A DNA stretch of 64,000 nt, from positions 220,303 through 284,302 of the forward strand of contig JAKMXF010000319.1 of the NCBI GenBank assembly GCA_024704765.1, given 5' to 3'. Shown here piece after piece: positions 29,001 to 64,000 of the stretch (the stretch's first letter is position 1; each line of letters begins with the position of its first letter). Source of the stretch: Oopsacas minuta. Taxonomy: Eukaryota; Animalia; Porifera. The notes beneath the pieces are model-generated. The model had not been told where the DNA came from, did not search any database, and was given only the letters and a program-made list of their open reading frames with translations. Made by a program: the position numbers and the translations under genes.

Positions 29001-32000
29001 ACCACAGACATCTAGAATACTCGCACACGTGGCTCGAAAAGAGTTGGGAAAAACTGGAGCTGATTTAGTATCGAGGTACCTACCATAAAACTGTATACGT
29101 TGCACACAATCTAACCCTACAAACTATTTCCAGACCAAAATGACGTCATCCTGATTGCTACTGCTAATGTATCAGAAAAATGCTCCCAATTTTACAGTTC
29201 TGTAAATAGTTTAATTAATACATTTACAGTCACAACATTTTACCATGGGGTTTAAGGATGTTTTCAAACAAAATATCAATATTTTGTTATAATAATATTC
29301 GAATGTCCCAGAGATATAACTCTTTTTGAGTCATGCGTTCGTGGAAATGTTTATACAGATCCGGCATATGCCAGTAAAATGCCTGCCTTACCGCTCCGAC
29401 AATTAAGTCCTGGAAGCTATTAGCGAACTCCCACGTGACCAAAATATTATTTAATAATACAGAGACTTAAGTTAATACGAACCCTACGAGAATTATATTA
29501 TTTGCCAGCGACTTGGTTCTTTCATTGTAAGAAAATTTTCAAAAAATACCTGACCCTGACTGTTCTATGACTATTTATTCTAGGTGAACGGGGCTAGCTT
29601 TGAAGGTATCTCCCATTCCCGTGCAGTCCAACATCTCCGGAAAGCTCAACGTCTCCGAATAGTAGTATTGAACTCCCAGAGATTCCCCGTTGCTAAGCAC
29701 GGAGATACACGCTACCACTGGATAGACCCTATATCCGGACAACCTACTCCTCCCCCACCTAACTCAGTCTTGAATAAGGAACTACTGCTTCAGGACTCTG
29801 ACATCAGGAAGGTTAGACTGGAGACAAGACATAATGAGGATCTGGGATTTAGTATTAGAGGAGGGTTAGAGCATGAACTTGGTGAGTTGATTAGGTTACT
29901 ATGGTTTTACATACTACGATTGTCCAAACCGAGTTGGATTTACCCAGAAAAGTATACAACAATCATCAATATGTAATTTACAACCTTGAGTAATATTTCA
30001 AATTTAATAATACTCGAGGTGACAACTCTCAACTATCCTGATTGCTCAATTCACTGTCAATTTTCCAAAAGTTTAAAAAATATGTTTGTCCCTCTGTTAA
30101 TACCAGAAACGATTGGTTAGGAAATTGCACCATGATGCCAATGTATTCTCGATATTCGAATAAGTAAGCAACAAATTACATTATTAAATTAGAATGTGTT
30201 TAAAATATACATCTGACGTCAATTATTCCAATAATGGTGTTTTATATTAATGTTAGGTGGCTTTCATAGGAAAATTTAAGAATATGCCTTGTCAAAAATA
30301 CAAAATACAACAGAATTGACCGATCAGGATAGTTGCGAATTGTCATACTCTCCCATAAGGGTAACACATCTTTGACGTCAAATGCATACACTAATATACA
30401 TTATATTAATATGATTAGGAATAGTTTTGTGATTACAGGAAAATGGGTAATCAATTACATTCCTAGTTGGTCTCAACCTTGGTAACATACATACTATTAT
30501 CAGTTATTCTCTCGATTTCCAGGTCTATTTTTGGTTGACGTAGAACCAAACTCTACTGCAGAATCAGTAGGCTTACTCCCTGGAGATCTGATAATTGATG
30601 TGAATGGAGTAGACTTCACTAACATATCCCATAGAGATGCTATTAGTATCCTCAAATCTCATCCTGTTATGCTGATAACACTGAAACACGTTGGAAAGAT
30701 TCCAGTATCAATTACGTCACAAACTGGCCCCACTGAATGGCATCGTATCAAACAACGGAATCCTTCAAACCTGACTTCGGCTACCCAATCACTCAGCTCT
30801 CGTACAGCTAAGAAATTCGTTCATGGCTACGGTACACAAATGATGCATCAAAAGCAGCAACCACATGCAAGTAGACACTTGATCGAGCATCGTACAAAAC
30901 AGCTGTTATCAGAGATAGAATCCAACACTATCATGTATTATTTGAATGAATATCGAGGACATGGACTGACTATAGAGGCCTTTCTTACTGTAATTTTAGA
31001 TATGTTGGATACTCCAGATAAATTGGTTCTGCTAGCTGATATACGTCAGGTTGTGTTTCCTAAGGATATAGAATACTTTGACAGGTTTGTGTAATTTTGA
31101 TATTTCATTAACCTCTATCATTGCTTAAAGCCCCTCCACTCTCTTCCGATCTGGAGCCGTATTCCCTAACAAAGTATCCATTCAATTTGTGAATTTTATA
31201 GCAATAACTCAATAATATTGAACCAATTATAACTACAGTAGATGCCGGTTATAAGAACACTCTTAGTGTAGTACTAAAATTGTTTCTCATTACCAGTAAG
31301 TATGAAGAATTCGGAGTACATTATATCGTAGATATGAAAATACTTTTCTTTAATATGGTTTCTACATCCGAAAGTGTTTAAATCAAGGGCTTCATAACCG
31401 GCATCTACTATATACAACTAACCGGTTATAAGAACGTTATGTCCAGTTCCCGACGATGTTCTTATAACCGGCATTCACTGTATTAGAGTATCATGCTCGG
31501 TGTTATATAGTAGTCCCCTCTGGAAGTTTATTACGTAGCGATTTTTCCCTTTATGCATAATACTTCCTTGAGAGACGCTTGGCAACATGGGACCAGACTG
31601 ACGCTAATCTACTAAAAAATGAACAATATTACGTGACACTGGGAGGCACTATTAGTTAGAAAAATCTAAAATTACAATCTGTGCCGATAGATTGGTCTAT
31701 TTTTATTTGTGTAAACCGTAAAGTCTCACTTCTATTTGCAGACACTATGTATTGTGGTTAAACTTTGGAATTAATAGTGTCCCCCAATTGCTAGTGCCAC
31801 TTTATACAAATAAATATATAACTGAGTCGAGCTATCGACAACTTATCAATTCGAGCTAATGCAGCGCTCCCCTTTCTGTATAATCAAATGATCTTATATC
31901 ATAATGCATAACTCTCAACTCCGAAAACCCTTGACTAATAGGTAGAAATTTTGGATAGGAACATGTTGTATTTTCAACAATTTCTTATCGAAATATGTGA

Positions 32001-35000
32001 AAATTTGCATATTAACTGTGTACTCAGGAAGTTGTAAAGACTTCACTTAGATATTCAAAATTTTAAATTTGTTCCTAGATGTATCTAACTCACCTAATGC
32101 CAAAATTCAGATTTCTAGCATTTCCCAACTCTTCTATTACTTCAACCCAAATCCAAAATATACACTCACCATTGTCACGCTGTCCTTAAACCTGAATTAT
32201 CTTTGAAAAATATGGCTCGTGGAAATGAGGTACTAAACTACTATGTATTTTTACCGTAGAATTGAATGGGAATACTTTGGAAATCGATTCCATGCGAATA
32301 TAGGAAATAATTGGCATATCAAAATTCCCGCCTTTGTCCTAGCTTAAAATGCATTTTATCTCTGGATCTATCAAGTTTTGCTGTTTAGAAAGTATTCTTG
32401 ACTGATGAAAAGTCAGTAATTTTGGTTATATTGGTAATAAAATTTCTATAACTAACAGGGTTGTTGACTTATGAATTCCCTTAATAATGATAGAATCAGA
32501 GTAATGGGAAAAACTACAAATGCTATAATTTCCATTATTGTCCATGGTGTATGAAAACTGTATTTTCATTACTATTATGTAAACCAAAATTGTTACGATT
32601 ATCCACAAAATCTATATTTTGAGAACTTCACATGATTGACGTTTAGGGACACTGAATTATTTGCGTTTTATTATACTTTAGGATACACTTCAAATCTTTT
32701 AAAATTTCCGCTCTTCAAATGATGATTATTATTTAAGCAAAAGTATTAAATCTACGAAGGACGATATGAATAATTCTTCAAGAATTTCGTCTTTAGTCTA
32801 ACCCATAATTACATTCATATTACTACTTACATAAATAGATCAAGTATTCAATTGAAACCTGAGAACAATTACGATTTGTTTCTAACAATTTACAAGTCAC
32901 GAGCCTTTGGCTCGCCGCATTGCGCCTCGTGGTATCTGTTATTCTCCAAATTGACGGCCCCTTTGAGTATTATAATATAGATATATTTAGAACAATGTAA
33001 TTCACAAATGTATTTATATGGCTTATATATTATTGAATTATTTTGTAGGATTACGCCCTTTGTAGCTGTTGAGGGCAAGTATCTATGTAAATAGGGCCGG
33101 ATTAGCCTTAAGCCAAATAAGCCCTGGCTCAGGGCCTCACGGCCCTCACCAATTCGACGGAAAAATAGCTTGGCATAGCCAGTCTCAGTCCCCACACTGC
33201 ATTTGTTGTTTGCTCATAAAGTGTAGTCATTTTGAATGCGAACGCCACAAAAATCAATCCTAATTGAATGACAAGGCAGTCAATATGAAAACATCAAAAC
33301 AGCGTCTATATCCACTATATTCGATTGTTAAGCTTCATTTCTTCTTTTCTAAATATCTAATGCACCATGCTTAATAAATGGATTTGTTAGTTACATATAG
33401 GCTTTCAGTTTATATTAAGCGAGGCCAGGGAGTGAGGTGTGAGCCTCTTTGAAATGCTTGCTATTCTGAGCAGGAATTATAGAGAGGGCCTCATAGTATA
33501 CTTGGCTTAGGGCCCCATCGAGTGCTAACCCGGCCCTGTATGTAAATTTTTGGATTTTGCAAATTTGTTTCCTTTATGTACCTAAAAGTAAACAAATATC
33601 CGCTAAATGTTGTTTACAATATGATATTCGGACTCAGCGTACTCGATTACCCCAGTATACCCATCGAAAGCATGTTTCTACCACAATTTGAAATTTGTTT
33701 ATGTTATATTCATAATAACAACAATAGATTTACATGTGAGAAACTTGAAAATGCGAAATTCGGATTCAGCGTACTTAGCTACCCCTGCATAGCCGTTTAG
33801 AGCAAGGCTGTACGTGTATTTTGAGATTTGCTAATTTGTTTACATAATATTCATAAAAACAACAAGAAATTTACATATGATTAATCCAAAAGTGTGAAAA
33901 TCGGATTCAGCATGTTAGATATATTTAGTGAACTTTTATTGAATCTTATTTACTTCCTTGATAAACACGATAAATACATAGTTGTGCGGCAATTCAAAAT
34001 TGCATACCGTAAATCCTTTCCTTGACAACGGACAAACAAACAAACAAACAAACAAGAATTCAGATTTAATAATTTATAAGTCATTAAATGACTTCTATAA
34101 CGGACATAACAAAATTTATCTGTTCAATCGAGTGTCACTCATTATTGTTACTCAGTTCACTTTCGGGCAGATTAGGTCAGCAAGATGCATAGCTATGGCT
34201 GATATGGCACCTGTTGGATTCCACGAACCGCCACTTGGCCAGAGAGAGGCTCCAGTGAGGTACACATTATCTACTCCCTTGAAACGGTAGTCAAGATCCA
34301 CAGGAGATCCCGTATCCTTTCCAAGCCGCATCGTGGAAGCTTCGTGTACGATGCATGGCGCTCGAATCATGTCAACCGTGGGTCGTCCTTTCGCCCAATC
34401 ACCAGACGATCCACCATGAGTGTGCCAATACTCCAATCCAGAAGGGGCCAAAATGTCGAGCATCTGGAAACTTGACTCTTCCATAGTTTCCCATACCTTA
34501 TTGTCTTTACTATTGGCCACCACTTGAAGAGTGACATTAGTGGTGACATCATCATCCTCATTCTTTCGGAACCAATTTTGATCATTATCGTAATCGAGCT
34601 CACCAAGGACAGTGCACACAAAGATTACATGATCTGTTGATGTTAATAGCTGCTGCATTGTTGGGGCTGCAACTACATCTGGCAAGTGACGTATGAAATC
34701 GAAGAGATTTTTCTTGGGAGTGTTATCGTATATTGCAGAAAGTTGTATGTGAAACTGGCTAGTGGATGACAGATCTCTTCCAGCTATGTAGTTCGCTGAC
34801 ATCTCCATGTTTCCAAATTTTCTATAATTGCAGAAGGTGTTAGCAGGAACTCGAGCAAAAATGGAACTGATGAAGTGGGCGGTGAATCGCTCGCCAATAT
34901 TGATCATCGAAGGAAAGTCGTGTTTGGAGAAGGAATTGAGCATGAGAGTGGTGGGTGGAAGCGCACCCATGGCAAGGATGACTTTAGCATTGCCGAGAAC

Positions 35001-38000
35001 AAAATCTCCCTTAGAAGTCTCCAAGACAACTGCTTTTCCTTCTTTGTGGTGGATCATTTTTACAACGCAATTGATGACTATTTTCATTGTCGAATCCTTG
35101 ATTGAAGCTTTTTCTTGGCCCACACTCAAGCTATAGAGTTTACTCAACAGAGGTCCTGGCACTGAGAATTTCTTGAAGTTGATATTTCTACAAAAACAAA
35201 TATCGCACTAAAACTATATATACGTCGTGAAGTTAGCAGCAAATTCCAGCAGTGAAATATGTGCACAACTTAGCACTAAATAATTCTATTAATTCTCTGT
35301 CAATTCATCTGAAATTTGGTCAGTAGCTTTGTCTGGAGTGGAGCATTTCCTGCGTTCAATAATTCATCCCTATTACACCTACTCTTGCCACAATCACATC
35401 GCAAAATTTGTATTACTAAAACACCATATAGTCAGGGCTGGCTGTTAGCCCTAAAACCGTGACAAGTCAGGTAAATGCACAAATTTGGTTACAATGGGGT
35501 GTGCTTAAACCTTTAGAGGGGAGCCAGTTCTTCGAAGATCAGGGGGTGTGATGCACAATCAGTTTTATGCGCCACTTTGAACACACTTTGAAGGTGTTTA
35601 CATGAATGTAATTCATCCAGTTTGAATCGAAACGAATTTTAGTGTCGATATTCGTAATCACCAAAATGTTTACGTCTTTTGAGTGGCCACTCGTATATGT
35701 TTAGAAATATGAATTATTGAATGTAGGAAATGCACCACTTCAGATAAAGGTACTGACCAAATTTCAGGTGAATAGAATGAGAAATTGACAGAATTATTCA
35801 GTTTCGAGTTATGCTCATATTTTACTGCAGGAATTCTCTAACTTCACACTCACTAAGTCTATTAACACCACGAAAGTAGAATACTGCCTCTTAGTTTGGA
35901 CAAATACAGCAACCAAACATCATATATCCTTGCTGTAAATGTTGAATATACCATGAACTCTTTATACTGGTTTGAATAGGTTGGCTTTAGGAAATTATAC
36001 AATACAATCACTACAAATCACCTGTACATGTGTGCTTCAACAGCAAGTGGGGCTGGCATCCATCTTGTGATTGTTGAAATTTTGCTTGAAATATCTTTCA
36101 ACCTTTCCTGTATATCCGACTGGAGTGCCCCGTAGATAGTATCTTTACCTTGCTCTGTTTTGGAGATTTGATCAGCTGGGATTACATTGAGCAACTGTTT
36201 CACTGCAGGAAAGTACTTGTGTACAACCTTTTTCGTTTCTTTCGGCCATTCCTCCATCTCTTCATCTGTAGGCTCAGGACACCAACCAGACCAAAAAGTT
36301 GACTTCCCACCAAAGAAGTTGTTCACGCCATGTTGCCATTTGATGTACTGGCCTTCATGGGTCTTCTTGGTAATCCTCCAAGGGAATGTCTCACCTATGC
36401 CATCCATTGTCATTACGAATGGAGGAGGAAGATTCTGGAAGTGCTCTGGGTGGTAGTAGGTACCCCTTTCAATAATCATAATTTTAGCATTGGGGTTGTT
36501 TTTGAGCGCTTGATCAACAAATGCAAGTGCACAAAATGAAGACCCAATGATAACATAGTCGAAGTTTCCTTTTCTTCGCTCGACATCCCACTCTTTATCG
36601 TTCAAGAAGAAGATATCATTCATAATATCATCTGGTCTGATGTCCTGAGGTCCAGGTACTGGGTAGCCAAATTGAGGGACTTCTCCTTGAGCCATTTTCG
36701 TTTTCCTATCAGCAATAGCTAGTGATATGGACTGCATGAAATATTTAGTTCGTGTACATTTTGGTTTGGGCTAAATAGATAAAATTTTCTAGTCGGTTTG
36801 TACCAATTTTATAAACTGACTAAATATTTCAGGCATTTTAGTTGAGGGTAGATAAGTGGTTTCTCAGGACAGAAAAAATCGAACATTTTGTTTCTACACT
36901 TGGAAACATGATGTTAAAATTTTCTGTCCTGGAAAACCACTTCCTTACCCTCTTAATTCATCCGGACCTAATGCTTGTTTTGTATATTACTATATTTCTA
37001 ATTAGCTAAGAATTAGCCAACAGCGAGGTTTTTGTCTATTTATAGTTGTGCCCGTCGTCTATAGTGCAGTTAATTTTACGCATTCAAATGATTATATCTA
37101 TGCTACAATAATTATTGCTAGATGTTGAGAGATGTCCCCTCTATGTACACAAATTACATAAAGGTAAACAAACTATTTATTAATCTATATTTTTCAATCC
37201 CAATTGTTGTTTGTTTGTCCGTTGTCAAGGAAAGGATTTACGGTATGCAATTTTGAAATTGTCGCATAACTATTTATTTATCGTGTTTATCAAGGAAGTA
37301 AAGAGAATACAATAAAAGTTCACTAAATATATCCAATATGCTGAATCCGAATTTCGCACTTTTGGATTAATCATATGTAAATTTATTGTTATTTTTATGA
37401 ATATAAAGTAAACAAATTTCCAAATGGTGGTAGAATCATACTTTCAACGACTGTACTGGGGTGATCGAGTATGCTGAGTCCGAATATGGTATTGTAAACA
37501 ACATATTGTGAATATTTGTTTACTTTTAGGTTAATAAAGTAAACAAATTTCAATATTGTTGTAGAATCGTACTTTCAACGGCAATAATGGTATACTCGAG
37601 TATACTGAGTCTGAATATTGTAACGACATCAACATTATTCAATCTCAATTGTTGTTTGTCTGTATATTTGTACGTTGAATACCTCGAGGCGCAATGCGCC
37701 GAGTTCATCGCAAAGCGACGAGCCAAAGGCTCGTAACATTAATATTCCAATTTTCTGATTCTACATACCAAAAAATCAAAAGATAAATTACATAAATAGT
37801 GCGAAAATATGTAGGATTGGAATGGAACCATTTTTTCAAAACATATTTTCCACTCTTGTTTGGGTATCGCTTCGATCACTGCGAAAAGTGCCCCCTCCAG
37901 CTCCTCATTAGGTTGAAAATCTCCTTCCATGAAATTGATATTTGATCGTTGGGAACAACCAGACGTCGCATGGGGCTAGGACCGGACTGTAGGGTAAGTG

Positions 38001-41000
38001 TGGCAACGTTTTGAGCCCAGAATATTCCAAAAATTCACGAGTCCAGAGTGCCGTGTGGTATGATGTTTATCATGATGAAGCAGTATTCCTCTTACAGTCT
38101 TTTCACGCTCTTTATGATGATTAGAAATTTTGATTCTCTTCAAATATTTCTTACAAATTTTTACATATTCAACCAACAACCTTAGGACACATTATATTAA
38201 TGAAATATCATTTGAAATAACACTCGGAGGCATTGGCTATGTATATTCATTCAAATATCTCTGTGGTTTGAGGACATTTACATTTGAAAGTATAAATGGG
38301 GAATGGAGGGTTATCAGGAGACTCCCGACCCGACCTTACAGTTCTACTGTATTTGATATATGAATTTATAATGAGGTATTACCCGTCATCAAACGATGCG
38401 CCGCCGCTGAAGCTATATATATTTGAAAGAAGACAGAAGTTAGCTATGTTTGTTTGTTGGTTTGTTTTATTGATAATTTATATCGTCATGATTACTAGGT
38501 GAAGAAGAAATTGTATATCCGTACTTGAAGTAGATCTTACAAAGTTGAAAAAGCTTTTGAAAACATATCGATTTCACTACTAACCAATTAGTGAATGAAT
38601 TCACGTGGCCTTGAGATTTGTCTATCTTGTTTAAACCTTTGACCGCCCATAATATATTACACTTCTACTTTCTAGGAATGAAGTTAATATTACAATGCAT
38701 AAATGATAATGCTGAACTCCACCTAGCTTATCTAACATGACACAATCTAGCATATATATTATCCTATCAGTCATTTTGTCTGCTTACAAATATTACAGAG
38801 ATGGTACTAGCATTGATATGATATGTTGCTAAATTTCTAATTATATTGGAGATATAATAAATCTAAAAGTTCCATAGTTTTATGGAATATTACTGAATGA
38901 ATGTGTCCTTTGCTTAATTCCAAACATATTGATTCTATTTCGAATGTGTTTATTCAAATTATACAGGTAACAATTTGACAATAATGGGAACTGTATTTTA
39001 TCTAGCCCTCACTTCAAGGTGGTGTTATATTCCCCACTCAGATACGAATCTGAATACATGCGGCACACCAGAGAAAGTTTCTTATCCCCCACTTAGGAGG
39101 TGGTTAAGAAATTGAACGGTTCTTCTCGACGAAACAGACTGTGGTCTATCCACCATCAAGTGATTGCCCAGGCACACGTTTCAAATTTTATTAGTAAGCA
39201 GATCGAACACAAAGTACGTCATACATAAACCATAAGGCCTATGCTAGTTTTAGAACTTAGAATTGATAATAATTGATCACCAGTTATACTTGTGGTATTG
39301 ATAGCAGCGTGTCATTGACAATATTTATTTAACGAACCTTTGGCTCGTCGCTTCGCCATGAACTCGGTGCATATCTATTATTCTCCAAATTTACGGCCCA
39401 TCTGAGCATTATTTAGGACAATATAATTAACAAATATACGTATATTGTATATATGTTATTGAATTAATTTGTAAGATAAACCCCCTTTGTAGCCGTTGAG
39501 AGCAAGTATCTACTTAAATATTGAGATTTTGCTAATTTGTTTACTTTATGTTCATAAAAACAACAATAAATTTACATATGATTTATCCAAAAGTGTGAAA
39601 ATCGGATTGAACATGTTCGATATATTTAGTGAACTTTATTGAATTCTATTTACTTGATAAACACGATAAATACAGTTACAAAATTGCATACCGTAAATCC
39701 TTTCCTTAACAACGGACCAAACAAACAGACAAACAGACAACAATTGAGATTTAATAATATAGATTATTCGATCTCAATTGTTGTCTGTTTGTCTGTCCGT
39801 TGTTAAGGAAAGGATTTACGGTATGCAATATTGAAATTGTCGCATAACTATGTATTTATCGTATTTATCAAGGAAGTAAATAGAATTCAATAAAACTTCA
39901 CTAAATATATCGAACATGCTGAATCCGATTTTCACACTTTTGGATTAATCATATGTAAATTTATTGTTGTTTTTATGAATATAAAGTAAACAAATTATCC
40001 AAATCTCAAAATATACGTACAGGCTTGCTCTAAACGGCTACACATATACACAGGGGTAACTAAGTACGCTGATTCCGAATTTTGCATCAAGTTTCTCATA
40101 TGTAATTTATTGTTGTTTTTAAGGCAATATAGTAAATAAATTTTCAAAATTGAGGTAGAATCATACTTTCAACGACTATACTGGAGTAATAGAGTATGCT
40201 GAATCCGAATATGGGATTGTAAACAACATATTGTGAATATTTGTTTACTTTAGGTACATAAAGTAAACAAATTTCCAAAAAGGGGTATAATCATACTTCC
40301 AACAACTATACTGGGGTAATCAGGTATGCTGAGTCCGAATATGATATTGTAAATAACATCTATATTGTTAAATCTCAATTGTTGTTTGTCTGTTTGTTTG
40401 TCCGCTGATATGTAAATATATTGTTGTTTTTATGAATAGGCTTGCTCTAAACAGCTACCCAGGGGTAACTAAGTACTCTGAATCAGATTTTCGCATTTTC
40501 AAGGTTCTTATGTGTAAAATTATTGTTGTTTTTATGAATATCTGTAAACAAATTGCCAAATGTCAAAATTTACGTAGATACTTGCTCTCAACGGCTACAA
40601 AGGGGAGGTTGGTCTTACAAAATATAATTTAATAACATATATGTGAATTTCATTGCTCTAAATATATCTATATTATGATACTCAAAGGGGGCCGTCTATT
40701 TAGAGGATAATGGATACCTCGAGGCACAATACGCCGAGTTCATCGCGAAGCGACGAGCCATAGGCTCGTTACATTAAAATTACTACTTACCTACAAAAGT
40801 ACATCAAGTATTCAATTGAAACCTGAGAACAATTACAATTTGATTCCAACAAATTTTCCAAACCATTAAATGATTTCTATAACGGACATAACAAAATTTA
40901 TCTGTTCAATCGAGTGTCACTCATTATTGTTACTCAGTTCACTTTCGGGCAGATTAGGTCAGCAAGATGCATAGCTATGGCTGATATGGTACCTGTTGGA

Positions 41001-44000
41001 TTCCACGAACCGCCAGTTGGCCAGAGAGAGGCTCCAGTGAGGTACACATTATCTACTCCCTTGAAACGGTAGTCAAGATCCACAGGAGATCCCGTATCCT
41101 TTCCAAGCCGCATCGTGGAAGCTTCGTGTACGATGCATGGTACTCGAATCATGTCAGCCGTGGGTCGTCCTTTCGCCCAATCACCAGCCGATCCACCATG
41201 AGAGTGCCAATACTCCAATCCAGAAGGGGCCAAAATGTCGAGCATCTGGAAACTTGACTCTTCCATAGTTTCCCATACCTTATTGTCTTTACTATTGGCC
41301 ACCACTTGAAGAGTGACATTAGTGGTGACATCATCATCCTCATTCTTTCGGAACCAATTTTGATCATTATCGTAATCGAGCTCACCAAGGACAGTGCACA
41401 CAAAGATTACATGATCTGTTGATGTTAATAGCTGCTTCATTGTTGGGGCTGTAGCTACATCTGGCAAGTGACGTGTGAAATCGAAGAGATTTTCCGTGGG
41501 AGTGTTATCGTATATTGTAGAAAGTTGTATGTGAAACTGGCTAGTGGATGACAGATCTCTTCCAGCTATGTAGTTCGCTGACATCTCCATGTTTCCAAAT
41601 TTTCTATAATTGCAGAAGGTGTTAGCAGGAACTCGAGCAAAAATGGAACTGATGAAGTGGGCGGTGAATCGCTCGCCAATATTGATCATCGAAGGGAAGT
41701 CGTGTTTGGAGAAGGAATTGAGCATGAGAGTGGTGGGTGGAAGCGCACCCATGGCAAGGATGACTTTAGCATTGCCGAGAACAAAATCTCCCTTAGAAGT
41801 CTCCAAGACAACTGCTTTTCCTTCTTTGTGGTGGATCATTTTTACAACGCAATTGATGACTATTTTCATTGTCGAATCCTTGATTGAAGCTTTTTCTTGG
41901 CCCACACTCAAGCTATAGAGTTTACTCAACAAAGGTCCTGGCACTGAGAATTTCTTGAAGTTGATATTTCTACAAAAACAAATATCGCACTAAAACTATA
42001 TATACGGGTGTGAGTCAGCAAATTCTAGCAGTGAAATATGTGCACAACTTAGCACTTAATAATTCTGTGGAACTTGGTCAGTACCTTTGTCTGGAGTGGT
42101 GCATTTCCTATATTCTATAATAATCCCTATCACAACTATTCTTGCCACATTGACATCGGAAAATTTGTACTACCAAATCCCCTAATAGTCAGGGCTGGCT
42201 GTTAGTCCTGAACCATGCCAAGTCAGGTAAAAGCACAAAATTTAGTACAATGTTACTGTAGGGTGTGCTTGAACTTTTAGAAGGGGAGCCAGTCCTTCGA
42301 AGATCAGGGGTGTGATGCACAATCAGTTTTATGTGCCTCTTTGAACACATTTTGAAGGTGTTTACATGAATGTAATTCATCCAGTTTGAATCGAAACGAA
42401 TTTTAGTGTCGATATTCGTAATCACCAAAATGTTTATTTACGTCTTTTGAGTGACCACTTGTATATGTTTAGAAATATGAATTATTGAATGTAGGAAATG
42501 CACCACTTCAGATAAAGGTACTGACCAAATTTCAGGTGAATAGAATAAGAAATTGACAGAATTATTCAGTTTCGAGTTATGCTCATATTTTACTGCAGCA
42601 ATTCTCTAACTTCACACTCACTGAGTCTATTAACACCACGAAAGTAGAATACTCCCTCTTAGTTTGGACAAATACAGCAACCAAACATCATATATCCTTG
42701 CTGTAAATGTTGAATATACCATGAACTCTATATACTGGTTTGAATAGGTTGGCTTTAGGAAATTATACAATACAATCACTACAAATCACCTGTACATGTG
42801 TGCTTCAACAGCAAGTGGGGCTGGCATCCATCTTGTGATTGTTGAAATTTTGCTTGAAATATCTTTCAAGCTTTCCTGTATATCCGACTGGAGTGCCCCG
42901 TAGATAGTATCTTTACCCTGCTCTGTTTTGGAGATTTGATCAGCAGGGATTACATTGAGCAACTGTTTCACTACAGGAAAGTACTTGTGTACAACCTTTT
43001 TCGTTTCTTTCGGCCATTCCTCCATCTCTTCATCTGTAGGCTCAGGACACCAACCAGACCAAAAAGTTGACCTCCCACCAAAGAAGTTGCTCATGCCATA
43101 CTGCCATTTGATGTACTGGCCTTCATGGGTCTCCTTGCTAATCCTCCAAGGGAATGTCTCACCTATGCCATTCATTGGCATTACGAATGGAGGAGGAAGA
43201 TTCTGGAAGTGCTCTGGGTGGTAGTAGGTACCCCTTTCAATAATCATAATTTTAGCATTGGGGTTGTTTTTGAGCGCTTGATCAACAAATGCAAGTGCAC
43301 AAAATGAAGACCCAATGATAACATAGTCGAAGTTTCCTTTTCTTCGCTCGACATCCCACTCTTTATCGTTCAAGAAGAAGATATCATTCATAATATCATC
43401 TGGTCTGATGTCCTGAGGTCCAGGTACTGGGTAGCCAAATTGAGGGACTTCTCCTTGAGCCATTTTCTTTTTCCTACCAGCAATAGCTAGTGTATGGCCT
43501 GCATGAAATATTTAGTTCGTGTACATTTTGGTTTGGGCCAAATAGATAAAACTTTCTAGTCGGTTTGTACCAATTTTATAAACTGACTAAATATTTCAGG
43601 CATTTTAGTTGAGGGTAGATAAGTGGTTTCTCAGGACAGAAAACCATGGAAACAAAATGTTCGAATTTTTTCTGTCCTGGAAAACCACTTACCTATCCTC
43701 TGAGTCTATCCGGACCTAATGCTTGTTTTGTATATCACTATATTTCTAATTAGCTAAGAATTAGCCAACAGCGAGGCTTTTGTCTATTTATAGTTGGCCC
43801 GCCGCTATAGTGCAGCTAATTTTAAGCATTCAAATGAACATATCTCTGCTTACCATTATTTTTGATAGATGTTGAGAGATGTCCCCTTTATCTATACAAA
43901 TTCCATAAAGGTAAACAAAATGTTTATTATTTGCATTAATATTGCAATTTTCTGATTCTACATACCAAAAATTCATAAGATAGCCGTTGACAGCTACATT

Positions 44001-47000
44001 CTATATAAAGTGCGAAAATCTGTAGGGTTGATATGAAACCACTTATCAAAACATTTCTTCCACTCTTGATTGCTATCTCTTCGAAGGATCACTGCGAAAA
44101 GTGCCCCCTCCAGCTCCTCATTAGTTTGAAAATCTCCTTCCATGTTATTAATCTTTGATCGTTGGGAACAACCAGACGTTGTATGTGGCTAGGTCCGGAC
44201 TGTAGGGTGTGTGAGGCAGTGTTTTGAGCCCAGAATTTTCCAAAAACTCACGACTCCAGAGTGCCGTGTGGTATGATGTTTATCATGATGAAGCAGTATT
44301 CCTCTTACAGTCTTTTCACGCTCTTTATGATGATTAGAAATTTTGATTTCTCTTCAGAATATTTCTTACAAATTTTTACATATTCAACCAACAACCTTAG
44401 GACACATTATATTAATGAAATATCATTTGAAATAACACTCGGAGGCATTGGCTATACATATTCATTCAAATATCTCTGTGGTTTGAGGATATTTACATTT
44501 GAAAGTATAAATGGGGAATGGAGGGTTATCAGGAGACTCCCGACCCGACCTTCCAGTTCTACTGTATTTGATATATGAATTTATAATGAGGTATTACCCG
44601 TCATCAAACGATGCGCCGCCGCTGAAGCTATATATATTTGAAAGAAGACAGAAGTTAGCTATGTTTGTTTGTTGGTTTGTTTTATTGATAATTTATATCG
44701 TCATGATTACTAGGTGGAGATGAAATTGTATATCCGTACTTGAAGTAGATCTTACAAAGTTGAAAAAGCTTTTGAAAACATATCGATTTCACTACCAACC
44801 AATTAGTGAATGAATTCACGTGGCCTTGAGATTTGTCTATCTTGTTTAAACCTTTGACCGCCCATAATATATTGCATATCTACTTTCTAGGAATGAAGTT
44901 AATATTACAATGCATAAATGATGATGCTGAACTCCACCTAGCTTATCTAAATGTTAGACACAATCTAGCATATATATTATCCTATCAGTCATTTTGTCTG
45001 CTTACAAATATTACAGAGATGGTACTAGCATTGATATGATATGTTGCCCCATATCCTACTATAATACGGATATACATGCTGCCGAATCATGGTAAATATT
45101 AAGACTCCAGTTTATGAAGAGTCGAAATTGTATCGGCTGATAAACTGAAAATACGTGTGATATGCCATATAGAAACGTAGCATCAAAGTACATACATATG
45201 TGGTCAAAATTTGTCATCATGTGGTCGCGGAATGTGCTATTTTTAGTACAACAAATGCGAGTTTCTAAACTGTAGTAGATATTATTCTAACATTCATGAC
45301 ATTTTGTATACACTCATCTTATTCAAAATGGAAATAACTCCGAAGATATTGAATGTACGCCATTGAAATGCGTATATTACTCGTTAATAGGAAATAACAT
45401 ATTGTGGTAACACTAGTATCCACTATAGATCGTTAGGATTAATAGTGATAGAGTTCTGGCTTCAATGTATTTATCGTATTTATCAAGGAAGTAAATATAA
45501 TTCAATAAAACTTCACTAAATATATCGAACATGCTGATTCCGATTTTCACACTTTTGGATTAATCATATGTAAATTTATTGTTGTTTTTATGAATATAAA
45601 GTAAACAAATTATCCAAATCTCAAAATATACGTACAGGCTTGCTCTAAACGGCTATCCAGTGGTAACTAAGTACGCTGAATCAAAATTCGCATTTTCAAG
45701 TTCTCATATGTTTATTTATTGTTGTTTTTATGAATACAAACTAAACAAATTTCCAAATTGTGGTAGAAACATGCCTTGAATGGTTATACTGAGGTAATCG
45801 AGTATGCTGAGTCCAAATATGGTATTGTAAACAACATTTCATAAATTTGTTCATTTTGGGGACATAAAGTAAGCAGATTTAAAGATTATGACGGTATCAT
45901 GTTTACTTATTTTAAGATTATGAGTTTATGTACTCGAGGGCCGTAGGCCCGAGTGTAGACACTAAGTGTTCGCAACCGCGTAGCGCGATCAAGCGAAGTT
46001 CGCTCGTATACTTTTAATATTAGCAGTATAGATACGTACCAAGGTTGAACCGATCGAACCGAATATCAGTATTCATGAATAGCAACCTAACAAAATGCTG
46101 ATGATATTCGGCTTGGACCATCCGAATACCGAATATGAACTAACTGGTTGCAACCTTAATGCCTACATATTATATTATTAGACTAAAAAGCGAAAATGAA
46201 TTCAGTATAAAAGATTTGAAACAGAGTTTGACAGACACGCGGACACAAATTTTTATAACATAGGTAGTTGGAAAAGAAGGGTACCAAATACATTATTTCC
46301 ATGGGTTAATTAATTACAATTACGTATACACGTACACACTATGGGGAGTACGTAATTGATTGTTTTCCATAAAGTAATAAAATGATACAAATAGATGAAT
46401 AATGTGCTAATAATGAGGAAAATTCCATAATGCAGAAATATTCCGAATTTGATGAAAATATGCATTGAATGCGGCACTGGAAAAACTGGTACTAGCCGAG
46501 TATATTTTGCAAATAATCAAAAATAACCGATCGCGTAACAGATTGTGTCTAAACTAGGTAGATTTCAACTTTATCATTTATGGCATTTTGTAACTGAATA
46601 TTGTAATACAAATTTCATTCCTAGAATGTAGATAGGTGATATGGTCATATGGGCTGAGCAATAGTTTATACATACAGCAAAACTCAAGCACACACCCAGT
46701 GTTTGGTAGTGAAATCGATCTTTGCAAATGTCCTTTAACATTTGAAAGATATATTTCTCGGAATGCAATTCATCTTCCACCAAGGAATCATGACGTCATT
46801 ATCAATAAACAAATAAATAACTTGTATTAGTTTCTAAGCTGGATATTTACAAAATATTTCATCACGGTAGTTGTATCATTTGACCTTATATCATATTTAG
46901 TTCAGCTCCTATTGAAAGATTTTGTAATGAATAATGCTGTAACAATTCCTCAAATACCCCCAACCGAAATTTTTGCCTCCAAAAATACACTGGGAAAGAG

Positions 47001-60816: not shown

Positions 60817-62031
60817 TTATGTAGGAGTCCCCTCAGAACAAGCATAGTCTTGACTATCTCCATTGTAGGTATAGCCGTATAGAATGAAATCATTAAGAAA
60901 TATCTGGTGAAGTTTCTCACGGAGATTATGTGGAATATCACGGAAGTACTCATTACACTTTTCACGTGTGGCCGTTCTGGGATATTTTTCGAAATATATG
61001 GGAATATTTGATTCATTGTTTTTCTGGAGATAATCAACCAAGATTTGTGATTCTTCAGCAATGAAATCATGGTCAATAAGAATGTCATAATTTGACATAC
61101 AAGGGTTGCATAGTTGAGTAATTGGGGACCAATGAGGATTTAATTTTTTCAACATGTCCCTATCCAAGAAGCTAGCCACCCAAGTAACAAACTCTAAAAA
61201 TGTAATGTTCAAGTCTCTTCCGCGTAATTTGATACGTTGTTCCTGTTTCTTAATTTCTTGCTCATCTAATGACATCTGAGCTTTTGACTTATCCTCCAGA
61301 TAATTGACTGTAATGATATCCTTAGCGTACCTAGCAGCGAGATAGAAATTATTACCACTAAATTTGCTACAATAGCCTGAGACAAGCCGTTCGAATGGGT
61401 GTCTGTAAACGAAGAATTTGGTGTATGTTTGTACGCGACGTGCTGTATCCAAGGGAGGACTCAAATATTCAAATAGATTAAATTTTGAATACTTCAATTT
61501 TCCTTCATACCCTAACATACTTGCGAATTTTATTGCCCATATATGGGACCCAGCTTTCGGTACCACACAATTTAACACCTCATAATCATCATTAAATCTC
61601 ATGAAATAATCACCAGCCCGAGTATTGAGTAAATAGTTCGATTCGCTTTGTATTTTCCTGCATTTTTCTTCAACCGAATTTCTACGCTCCAAGAACTTAG
61701 GATAAACTTGTGCCAGAGGATGATTACCTTTACTTTTCATTGCTTTTACGTATTCATCAGTAAGGATAATTTGATAACCTTTGATACTTATCAACATTGT
61801 ACCATTCCAGTTATCTCTGTATTCAATCCATGATGAATTTAATCTAATATCAATTGTAACATCCTCTCCTTTGAATGTTTCAGGTCTGTTATGTAGTCCT
61901 AGCTTCTCTAGGATTACTGATATTTTATACTTCTCTGATTGCATAGAAAAATAATGATAGATGCATCCAGTGAGAAATAGGAATGCCAGGAATACGGAAG
62001 TATATTTACATCTCTTCGAACATATTATCAT
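60817..62031 (-). CDS. Carbohydrate sulfotransferase (CHST / HNK-1ST, Sulfotransfer_2 family), type II membrane protein, 404 aa, intronless
   Basis: N-terminal TM segment VFLAFLFLTGCIY, 5'-PSB CVVPKAGS, 3'-PB FVYRHPFERLVSGY, HWSPITQLCNPC and terminal DFILYGY. Confidence 0.9.
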   Translation of the reverse strand: MIICSKRCKYTSVFLAFLFLTGCIYHYFSMQSEKYKISVILEKLGLHNRPETFKGEDVTIDIRLNSSWIEYRDNWNGTMLISIKGYQIILTDEYVKAMKSKGNHPLAQVYPKFLERRNSVEEKCRKIQSESNYLLNTRAGDYFMRFNDDYEVLNCVVPKAGSHIWAIKFASMLGYEGKLKYSKFNLFEYLSPPLDTARRVQTYTKFFVYRHPFERLVSGYCSKFSGNNFYLAARYAKDIITVNYLEDKSKAQMSLDEQEIKKQEQRIKLRGRDLNITFLEFVTWVASFLDRDMLKKLNPHWSPITQLCNPCMSNYDILIDHDFIAEESQILVDYLQKNNESNIPIYFEKYPRTATREKCNEYFRDIPHNLREKLHQIFLNDFILYGYTYNGDSQDYACSEGTPT

Positions 62032-63369: not shown

Positions 63370-64000
63370 CAGTGGCGTAGCCAGGAATAGTTGGAAGGGG
63401 GGGGGCAATTAAAATTATTTATTACACTAAACATAACAAATAACCTAATTACCAATATATTATATTACGTGTATCAATTTATTTTTAATGAATATACTAT
63501 GAATGATGTCTATAGAAATCTAATCAACACAGCACATACTAAGATAATTGTAATCTCCTATCTGCCATGGATACAAACTTAGAAATGAGGTCTTCATTAT
63601 CTAGAGAAAGCAGAATTTCTTTCTCTATTGAGCAAAACATCAATGATTCTAGACAATCTTCGCACATTGTAGACCGTAACTTAGTTTTAATCAAAGACAA
63701 TTTGGAAAAACTTCTTTCTGCATGGGCTGTAGTCACTGGGAGTGTGTATAATATTCGATACATGTAGCGGAGTTCTGTGTATGAATGAGGTAATTCGTTA
63801 TAAACATCAAGTAAAGGAGTGTCTTGTTGTATAAAATGCCTTGCTAGGTTCCATTCAGCTATAAAACGGTCTGGAGATATTCTTTTGTATTGATGAACAA
63901 GTTTTAGAAGATTTTCCTCTGCGTCAATGGCTTCAAAATTCCTTGGATCCAAAAATGCAAAATTAATTAATTGATTGGGGAAGCGAGAATTAATCTCAGA
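63370..64000 (-). mobile_element. End of a hAT transposon (runs off the window)
   Basis: Terminus cagtggcgtagccagg...ggggggggc at 63370, downstream of the transposase C-terminal ORF. Confidence 0.7.
63539..63952 (-). CDS. hAT transposase C-terminal dimerisation domain (ZMYM1-like), partial
   Basis: LYTLPVTTAHAERSFSKLSLIKTKLRSTM is the hATC signature. Confidence 0.85.
   Translation of the reverse strand: MDPRNFEAIDAEENLLKLVHQYKRISPDRFIAEWNLARHFIQQDTPLLDVYNELPHSYTELRYMYRILYTLPVTTAHAERSFSKLSLIKTKLRSTMCEDCLESLMFCSIEKEILLSLDNEDLISKFVSMADRRLQLS

Follow-up and report, generated by a model that had tools for sequence, protein, structure and literature searches.

The nearest characterized relatives of the genes treated here are the bacterial glycoside 3-oxidases, C-glycoside oxidases, and pyranose oxidases, i.e., PsG3Ox (PDB 7qf8 and 7qfd), CarA (7dve), DaCGO1 (8qve), and OPOx (9fl2), and the fungal pyranose 2-oxidases (P2Ox) of Trametes, Peniophora, and Phanerochaete, which are thought to be of bacterial ancestry. 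The His residue in the flavin loop of pyranose oxidases is the site where flavin adenine dinucleotide (FAD) is covalently attached; in the majority of bacterial homologues its binding is non-covalent (PMC11650716). Genes of prokaryotic derivation have been reported for the sponge Amphimedon queenslandica (Conaco et al., 2016; PMC4784904). Here we describe two tandem genes encoding GMC flavoproteins on the minus strand of a 64,000-nucleotide (nt) stretch of the genome of the glass sponge Oopsacas minuta (contig JAKMXF010000319.1, positions 220,303 to 284,302; hereafter the window). They are a recently duplicated, intact pair from an uncharacterized GMC subfamily, which probably reached the sponges through an old transfer from a bacterium and subsequently gained an intron and was duplicated. 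The family is not described for any sponge in the literature searched, which includes the Oopsacas genome paper, and the main texts (as distinct from the supplementary gene lists, which were not searched) of the Amphimedon study on horizontal gene transfer (PMC4784904) and of a metazoan compendium on the same subject do not mention it. No link was found with the GMC gene located beside dinoflagellate MAA clusters (PMC9298759), the sequences not having been compared.

Gene Models of the Tandem Pair

Both genes consist of two exons and one intron, are intact, and encode a protein of 569 amino acids (aa; Table 1). Both introns are in phase 2, interrupting a codon between its second and third bases, and neither the four splice sites nor the two reading frames show any damage. 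An earlier reading of this DNA from its letters only (the sequence-only reading) had placed both genes, their motifs, and the phase-2 GT-AG introns at these positions, where we also found them, and had noted Phe in place of the flavinylated His, which holds for both copies. The motifs GSSFCA, HEAST, and WNPT are likewise all present in both. Because an in-frame ATG upstream of copy 1 (at 36737) is not conserved, the same place in copy 2 being a stop, the start was set at MAQGEV.

The deposited protein P0001 (hypothetical protein LOD99_6661 of O. minuta, 569 aa) is 100% identical to the translation of both exons of copy 2 and has the same splice model, which identifies the window as glass sponge DNA. 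The public annotation of Oopsacas was made by BRAKER/Augustus guided by RNA-seq mapping (PMC10280926); the annotated splice of LOD99_6661 is consistent with transcript support, though no proof of it. In our analyses the exons were searched separately, full-length analyses were performed on P0001, and codon statistics were calculated for each exon by itself, the split codon being omitted.

Assignment to a GMC Subfamily

The C-terminal GMC domain (PF05199, GMC_oxred_C) is recognized in P0001 with 40.9 bits (gathering cut-off 24.6) and in exon 2 of both copies with 40–42 bits (E 1e-10, and 5e-10 for copy 1), and the N-terminal domain (PF00732) reaches 18.8 bits in the sponge protein and 30.2 bits in the homologue from Priestia against a cut-off of 23. 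None of the NCBIfam models comes near its cut-off for P0001: the pyranose 2-oxidase equivalog (TIGR02462) scores 22.1 bits against 544.9, and the choline dehydrogenase models NF002550 and TIGR01810 score 27.8 against 605 and 16.6 against 732. A grouping with ordinary animal GMC dehydrogenases had been set beforehand as a refuting test of the sequence-only reading. With choline dehydrogenase scores so far below their cut-offs an ordinary animal GMC enzyme was rejected, and no non-sponge animal is present among the named homologues listed (from the best 120 matches of each search).

A word-based search with exon 2 yielded 458 relatives, with homologues up to E 1e-225, a likeness well in excess of chance. 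Among the matches listed, the closest are open reading frames (ORFs) of ~340 aa on long contigs, followed by full-length bacterial proteins of ~590 aa with ~50% identity. In the match lists of all the searches, the relatives that carry a name belong to three sponges, to one lycophyte, and for the rest to bacteria. The exon 2 matches include Dysidea avara, a demosponge, and Diphasiastrum, the lycophyte.

A full-length alignment of 33 sequences (alignment A1) has a mean column identity of 64%, which is very strong conservation; identities between the sponge protein and the other 32 members, mostly bacterial, are 47–52%. The flavin loop of this alignment reads GGRST[L/F/M/Q]WS.WCP and a His at the flavin-linking site occurs in none of the 33 members: both Oopsacas copies and Dysidea carry Phe, and the bacteria and the lycophyte carry Leu (mostly), Met, or Gln. 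VHE.ST and SWNPT are invariant. In the dinucleotide motif (GxGxxG/A) the sponge protein has Ser for the second Gly (G-S-S-F-C-A), where most bacterial members have G-S-G-F-C-A, but the Ser variant is also found in Priestia, in another bacterial member (P0063), and in Dysidea, so that this variant, earlier described as degenerate, is not peculiar to the sponge. HMMER alignments pair the His of VHEAST with that of VYHPVGT in choline oxidase and the Asn of SWNPT with that of NPN, residues that we take to be H466 and N510 of choline oxidase. This His-Asn pair (H506/N548), already proposed to be catalytic in the sequence-only reading, has its counterpart in the corresponding segments of 8qve as well. 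The Oopsacas proteins form part of a distinct, uncharacterized GMC subfamily and not of the pyranose oxidase family; its other members are numerous sponge paralogues, from glass sponges as well as demosponges, and rare, stand-alone bacterial proteins. Both the replacement of His by Phe and the GSSFCA motif are traits of this subfamily, shared with its bacterial members, rather than innovations of the sponge.

Nearest Solved Structures

Searches of the PDB with single sequences (phmmer) gave E-values of only ~1e-3 to 1e-5, spread over several different GMC enzymes, and only 1e-3 for glycoside 3-oxidase and C-glycoside oxidase. With the A1 profile, 8qve (C-glucosyl oxidoreductase DaCGO1) came first (E 4.5e-10) and cellobiose dehydrogenase behind it (1e-6); the match to 8qve rests mostly on the C-terminal 75 residues. 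This profile alignment pairs the flavin loop of the family (GG-x-S-T-F-W in the sponge protein) with GGMGAHWTCACP of 8qve, a local stretch that is weak when taken alone (i-Evalue 99), and thereby reproduces the earlier alignment of this loop with the pyranose oxidase motif. An AlphaFold model built from A1 has a predicted local distance difference test score (pLDDT) of 79 and a predicted template modeling score of 0.85, with weak regions at residues 1–14, 82–104, 121–135, and 224–230. In Foldseek the bacterial pyranose/C-glycoside oxidases 9fl2, 8qve, and 7qf8 come first (E ~2e-20), followed by cellobiose dehydrogenase (1e-18). The 50 best structure matches are all GMC enzymes (Z 23–27, 397–449 residues aligned), in agreement with a two-domain GMC fold; the VIA-align Z values are highest for 7qfd (26.9), 7qf8 (26.5), and 7dve (26.4), followed by fungal P2Ox (~25.6–25.8) and choline oxidase (24.3). 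Pyranose oxidase clusters are also among the neighbors in ESM Atlas features. The clade of pyranose 2-oxidases and glycoside 3-oxidases thus comprises the nearest characterized relatives, by a small margin. Of the earlier description of the genes as "pyranose-oxidase/C-glycoside-oxidase-like" this likeness stands; membership of that family does not, considering the TIGR02462 score (22 bits against 545) and an identity of 12–18% to the solved pyranose and glycoside oxidases. A pyranose oxidase orthologue was rejected on the same grounds.

With PsG3Ox, CarA, DaCGO1, and OPOx the sponge protein shares the two-domain fold (Z 25.4–26.9 over 411–434 residues at 3.2–3.8 Å), a GG-x-x-x-[H/L/F]-W-[T/S]-x-x-C-P loop, the His-Asn pair, and the lack of a signal peptide; the bacterial pyranose and glycoside enzymes usually hold their FAD non-covalently (PMC11650716). 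It differs from these four in its low identity (14–18%), in the absence of the flavin-loop His from all 33 members of alignment A1, and in a length greater by ~50–100 residues, including a conserved N-terminal extension of ~45 residues. The fungal pyranose 2-oxidases are similar in fold (Z ~25.6), flavin-loop motif, and His-Asn pair, but the 8-alpha-N3-histidyl link to FAD, formed by the His of S-T-H-W-T, is impossible with Phe or Leu at this position, and there is no evidence for the tetramer head/arm elements or the substrate loop of the fungal enzymes. The sponge protein has Ser at what is presumably the position of the gating Thr169 of fungal P2Ox. With ordinary animal GMC proteins (choline dehydrogenase and the insect glucose dehydrogenase-like proteins) it shares the superfamily, i.e., the FAD-binding and C-terminal GMC domains; it is set apart from them by the scores and match lists given above.

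An Intron Shared by Glass Sponges and Demosponges

The ~340-aa matches are gene calls of exon 2 only in eukaryotic assemblies. At three loci (L001–L003) an ORF of ~225 aa precedes the exon 2 ORF, and the break between them is a GT-AG phase-2 intron, ~55 to ~840 nt long, that follows the homologous codon (...Y/H-R). The ORF is interrupted at the same residue (~225) in D. avara (~55 nt), in Halichondria panicea (L090/L091; ~110 nt), and at a further locus (L092; ~2.9 kb) belonging to the most divergent eukaryotic subclade. Intron phase was read base by base in Oopsacas and L001–L003, and the position in Dysidea, Halichondria, and L092 was established by residue. The gene of Diphasiastrum is intronless. 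Since the intron is found at the same codon in glass sponge and demosponges and the intron-bearing sequences form one clan, both the entry of the gene and the gain of the intron predate the split between these two groups. The sequence-only reading proposed an acquired gene that had gained an intron; the bacterial identity of the closest non-sponge relatives agrees with this, but the event did not take place in Oopsacas itself, as the intron codon is common to Dysidea and Halichondria. In this respect the family also differs from the prokaryote-derived genes of A. queenslandica, with which it shares bacterial closest non-sponge relatives, a canonical intron, host neighbors, and tandem duplication (Conaco et al., 2016; PMC4784904): it occurs in two classes of sponges, its intron conserved between them, and is therefore much older than a lineage-specific transfer.

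The closest relative outside Oopsacas is L001, with its cluster members P0126/P0127 (~68% identity, intron ~840 nt), located on a 1.6-Mb contig (ENA ERZ26695579) that holds at least three GMC copies beside a Pao-type retrotransposon. It may derive from another glass sponge. In H. panicea (OY776067.1, ~5.65–5.67 Mb) tandem GMC copies alternate with aldo-keto reductases (AKR) in the order AKR-GMC-AKR-GMC-AKR; neither the surroundings of the Oopsacas pair nor five other eukaryotic loci examined contain an AKR gene.

Phylogeny and Distribution in Bacteria

In a maximum likelihood tree of the exon 2 region (121 rows) a branch with 100% support in the Shimodaira–Hasegawa-like approximate likelihood ratio test (SH-aLRT) separates all full-length bacterial proteins from ~83 split-ORF sequences. 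A second tree, to which 70 taxon-labeled bacterial genes from species-representative genomes were added, shows the same split with 99% SH-aLRT; both trees are unrooted. Scanning ~186,000 species genomes with a pattern of two conserved peptides gave 115 confirmed relatives, of which 80 loci were kept, distributed over at least 10 phyla and 40–49% identical to the sponge protein. The bacterial clan is scrambled relative to phylum and the gene is mostly solitary, in variable regions, a pattern typical of a mobile accessory gene. The lycophyte sequence nests within this clan, beside Paenibacillus and Priestia. Its locus, on a chromosome-scale scaffold of Diphasiastrum complanatum (CM055098.1; L005:6001-7800), is an intronless GC-rich island (0.54, with flanks of 0.32–0.45), and this copy stems from a recent transfer of its own or else is an artifact of the assembly.

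A five-residue insertion (NSF-PKxxF-P) occurs in nearly all eukaryotic sequences and in only 4 of ~83 bacterial ones, all from a single cyanobacterial subgroup (L017, P0074, P0084 of Okeanomitos corallinicola, and P0106). With the insertion columns removed, this subgroup falls in a basal polytomy of the bacterial clan. When the eukaryotic clan was forced together with the insertion-bearing cyanobacteria, the tree was slightly better than the free tree (log-likelihood difference +0.43), and this arrangement was not rejected by the approximately unbiased test (p 0.535). The shared insertion hints at a cyanobacterial donor.

Divergence of the Two Oopsacas Copies

The copies are 98.1–98.5% identical in their exons, 93.9% in the intron, and 92.2% in the 5' flank. 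Synonymous divergence (dS) and non-synonymous divergence (dN) are both 0.017 (dN/dS 1.04) and intron divergence is 0.061, so that 6 synonymous differences are seen versus ~22 predicted from the intron. The GC content of third codon positions is 0.44–0.46 in the GMC exons versus 0.30–0.33 in the other genes of the window. The low dS relative to the intron, together with this raised GC content, suggests that the copies have undergone gene conversion that was GC-biased and restricted to the exons.

The 23 amino-acid differences cluster at residues 96–131 and 376–403 (in copy 1 at ~36410–36303 and ~34736–34653; permutation tests p 0.005–0.008 for one window of residues and <0.001 for two). Each copy departs from the family at four sites with at least 94% conservation (S109T, M124V, R131K, and V501A in copy 1; T96P, H122Y, V397A, and A398T in copy 2). 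With the differences clustered and the conserved sites struck about equally in both copies, this pattern would favor diversification of loops over simple decay.

A dispersed repeat of ~420–500 bp (86–88% identity, mixed orientation) flanks the duplicated units at 33555–34051, 39778–40280, and 45465–45880, and the spacer between the units contains a self-inverted repeat at 39488–40042. These repeats may be remnants of transposons that mediated the duplication.

Putative Function and Bacterial Gene Context

Attachment of FAD through the flavin-loop His is not possible because this residue is absent, and, with the covalent link located at this His and FAD held non-covalently in most bacterial homologues (PMC11650716), the non-covalent binding proposed in the sequence-only reading is reasonable and unremarkable. 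In the mechanism we propose, which is that of a GMC alcohol oxidase or dehydrogenase, a hydride would be transferred from a secondary alcohol to N5 of the non-covalently bound FAD, with H506 acting as base, and FAD would be re-oxidized by O2 or a quinone. Neither an N-terminal signal-type hydrophobic stretch nor a C-terminal SKL-type signal was read in the sequence of the sponge protein, and the enzyme is predicted to be cytosolic because of the lack of the former. A hydroxyl group of a sugar or glycoside is, with low confidence and by analogy, the leading guess for the substrate.

At 19 of the 80 bacterial loci a PAS-like (PAS_4-like) plus Cupin_5 (DUF985) protein is encoded on the same strand as the GMC gene, mostly at 4–45 nt and in a few cases at 67–138 nt, either fused (~306 aa) or split into two ORFs. 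Carriers belong to five phyla and include Bacteroidota, Vibrio, cyanobacteria, Endozoicomonadaceae, and Betaproteobacteria. This protein is a candidate operon partner of the bacterial GMC enzyme, judging from gene order; no characterized function of DUF985 was encountered in the literature searched. This protein and the AKR genes of Halichondria are the only clues to function that gene context provides. The 80 loci contain no other recurrent neighbor and no C-deglycosidase (sugar isomerase-type) genes, in which they differ from the surroundings of CarA, PsG3Ox, and DaCGO1, and three bacterial neighborhoods inspected singly had nothing in common. No homologue of the partner is located near the sponge genes in the window or at six other eukaryotic loci.

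Table 1. Positions of the GMC gene pair, its motifs, and associated features in the window (1 = first nucleotide of the window), with examples of the candidate partner at bacterial loci.
Feature	Position	Strand	Remark
Copy 1, exon 1	36022–36695	-	ATG at 36695; 224 codons + 2 nt; tblastn against P0001 95.6% identity
Copy 1, GSSFCA	36545–36528	-	Exon 1
Copy 1, flavin-loop motif GGKSTFWSGWCP	36311–36276	-	Exon 1
Copy 1, intron	35188–36021	-	834 nt, GT...AG, phase 2, polypyrimidine tract before acceptor; read from sequence
Copy 1, exon 2 incl. stop	34152–35187	-	Coding to 34155, stop 34154–34152; GMC_oxred_C E 5e-10
Copy 1, HEAST (catalytic His)	34346–34332	-	Exon 2
Copy 1, WNPT (Asn)	34223–34212	-	Exon 2
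Copy 2, exon 1	42790–43463	-	ATG at 43463; 100% identical to P0001 residues 1–225
Copy 2, flavin-loop motif GGRSTFWSGWCP	43079–43044	-	Exon 1; Arg instead of the Lys of copy 1
Copy 2, intron	41970–42789	-	820 nt, GT...AG, phase 2, junctions as in copy 1
Copy 2, exon 2 incl. stop	40934–41969	-	Coding to 40937, stop 40936–40934; 100% identical to P0001 residues 225–569
Copy 2, HEAST	41128–41114	-	Exon 2
Copy 2, WNPT	41005–40994	-	Exon 2
Duplicated unit A	34082–38829		Self-blastn; matches 40864–43929 and 43934–45047 at ~94%; extra ~550 nt at 37183–37736
Duplicated unit B	40864–45047		Self-blastn; tandem partner of unit A
Host gene fragments (protein kinase, PDZ, sulfotransferase) and hAT transposase dimerisation fragment	2095–2763, 30531–31094, 60817–62031, 63539–63952		
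PAS-like + Cupin_5 partner, examples	L028:9747-10667, L023:6988-7937, L017:9741-10955, L030:9777-10664		

Discussion

The most economical reading of these data is a single transfer from a bacterium, perhaps a cyanobacterium, to the sponges, a direction that we infer. This old transfer would have taken place before glass sponges and demosponges split, perhaps with a cyanobacterium of the insertion-sharing lineage as donor, and would have been followed by the gain of the intron and then by repeated duplication. Gene conversion has probably kept the exons of the two Oopsacas copies alike, with divergence of two loops at the surface or the active site. Several observations weigh against parts of this interpretation. 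The trees being unrooted, the direction of transfer rests only on distribution, i.e., many bacterial phyla versus one animal phylum. Only three named sponges are present among the intron-bearing sequences, so that a sponge-wide or sponge-only scope is not fully demonstrated, and well-annotated sponges such as Amphimedon are absent from the top matches, so that the family may occur only patchily in this phylum. The flavin loop is badly modeled (pLDDT <50 at residues 121–135), the lead of the pyranose and glycoside oxidases over other GMC enzymes is small (~1–2.6 Z units and ~100-fold in Foldseek E-value), and the bacterial neighborhoods (80 loci) lack sugar-pathway genes, the substrate being a guess by analogy. 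A dN/dS of ~1 between the copies is, on its own, also compatible with relaxed constraint.

The bacterial identity of the closest non-sponge relatives might raise the suspicion that the genes derive from a bacterial or symbiont contaminant of the assembly. This has a negligible chance of being correct and was rejected: as the sequence-only reading argued, a spliceosomal intron, here at a position conserved across sponge genomes, speaks against bacterial DNA, and the genes lie in an AT-rich region (35% GC, in a window of 32–40% GC throughout) among protein kinase, PDZ, sulfotransferase, and hAT sequences, on a 365-kb contig of the deposited assembly, with the same family present on chromosome-scale scaffolds of Dysidea and Halichondria. 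A more serious alternative, which we nevertheless regard as unlikely, reverses the direction: the family may have arisen in sponges or an older eukaryote and have passed once to bacteria, e.g., to a sponge-associated cyanobacterium, and then have spread among bacteria, or it may be an ancient vertically inherited gene lost in all other eukaryotes. In depth and diversity the eukaryotic clan indeed equals or exceeds the bacterial clan as a whole, and the latter is one side of a single branch with the insertion-bearing cyanobacteria at its base; its members are rare (115 confirmed in ~186,000 species genomes in the two-peptide scan) and scrambled across phyla, and one carrier belongs to the Endozoicomonadaceae, which associate with animals. 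Passage of an intron-bearing gene from a eukaryote to a bacterium, however, requires a cDNA step, and the apparent operon with the PAS-like plus Cupin_5 protein in five phyla suggests long residence in bacteria. Among the named matches listed no other eukaryote is found except the lycophyte, with its intronless gene nested in the bacterial clan, and the nearest outgroups, i.e., the glycoside 3-oxidases and pyranose oxidases, are mainly bacterial (PMC11650716; Atlas clusters).

Two further alternatives, each with only a slim chance in our view, concern the proteins themselves. That they are true orthologues of pyranose 2-oxidase or C-glycoside 3-oxidase acting on the same substrates as the characterized enzymes would agree with the best profile and fold matches and with the pyranose oxidase-type flavin loop and His-Asn pair, but the scores of choline oxidase and cellobiose dehydrogenase are almost equally high, the covalent His is missing, the TIGR02462 score and the sequence identity are low, and the bacterial homologues are not located beside C-deglycosidase genes. 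Similarly, one or both copies could be drifting toward loss of function under relaxed constraint after duplication. Both reading frames and the four splice sites are intact, however, the catalytic His-Asn pair and the majority of the invariant residues are retained, and the exons are 3–4 times less diverged than the intron, even though dN/dS is close to unity and four highly conserved sites have changed in each copy; moreover, the replacements are concentrated in two segments (p 0.005, and p <0.001 for two windows) and not spread. A bacterium-to-sponge transfer followed by intron gain and duplication, in a subfamily of its own, therefore remains the reading we prefer.

A much further-reaching interpretation can be offered only tentatively, and we consider it doubtful. 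The gene would have been captured more than 0.5 billion years ago, probably from a cyanobacterial associate, and have given rise to a many-membered group of sponge-specific oxidases, whose active-site loops diversify under selection and which act on a variety of small molecules, i.e., glycosides or further secondary alcohols, in defense or in the handling of symbiont metabolites, and the bacterial PAS-like plus Cupin_5 protein would belong to a new two-step pathway.

Overall, our finding is a well-supported annotation and history rather than a new mechanism. If this history holds, it provides a clean case of a gene of bacterial ancestry that was fixed before the two largest sponge classes split, which is marked by one conserved intron and by a rare shared insertion pointing to a donor lineage, and which would be useful for dating and for studying how early animals acquired foreign genes. 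Conservation within the subfamily is strong (40–50% identity between sponges and ten bacterial phyla), but it has no characterized member; it could yield a new oxidase activity, which would be a neighbor of the biotechnologically used pyranose and glycoside oxidases.

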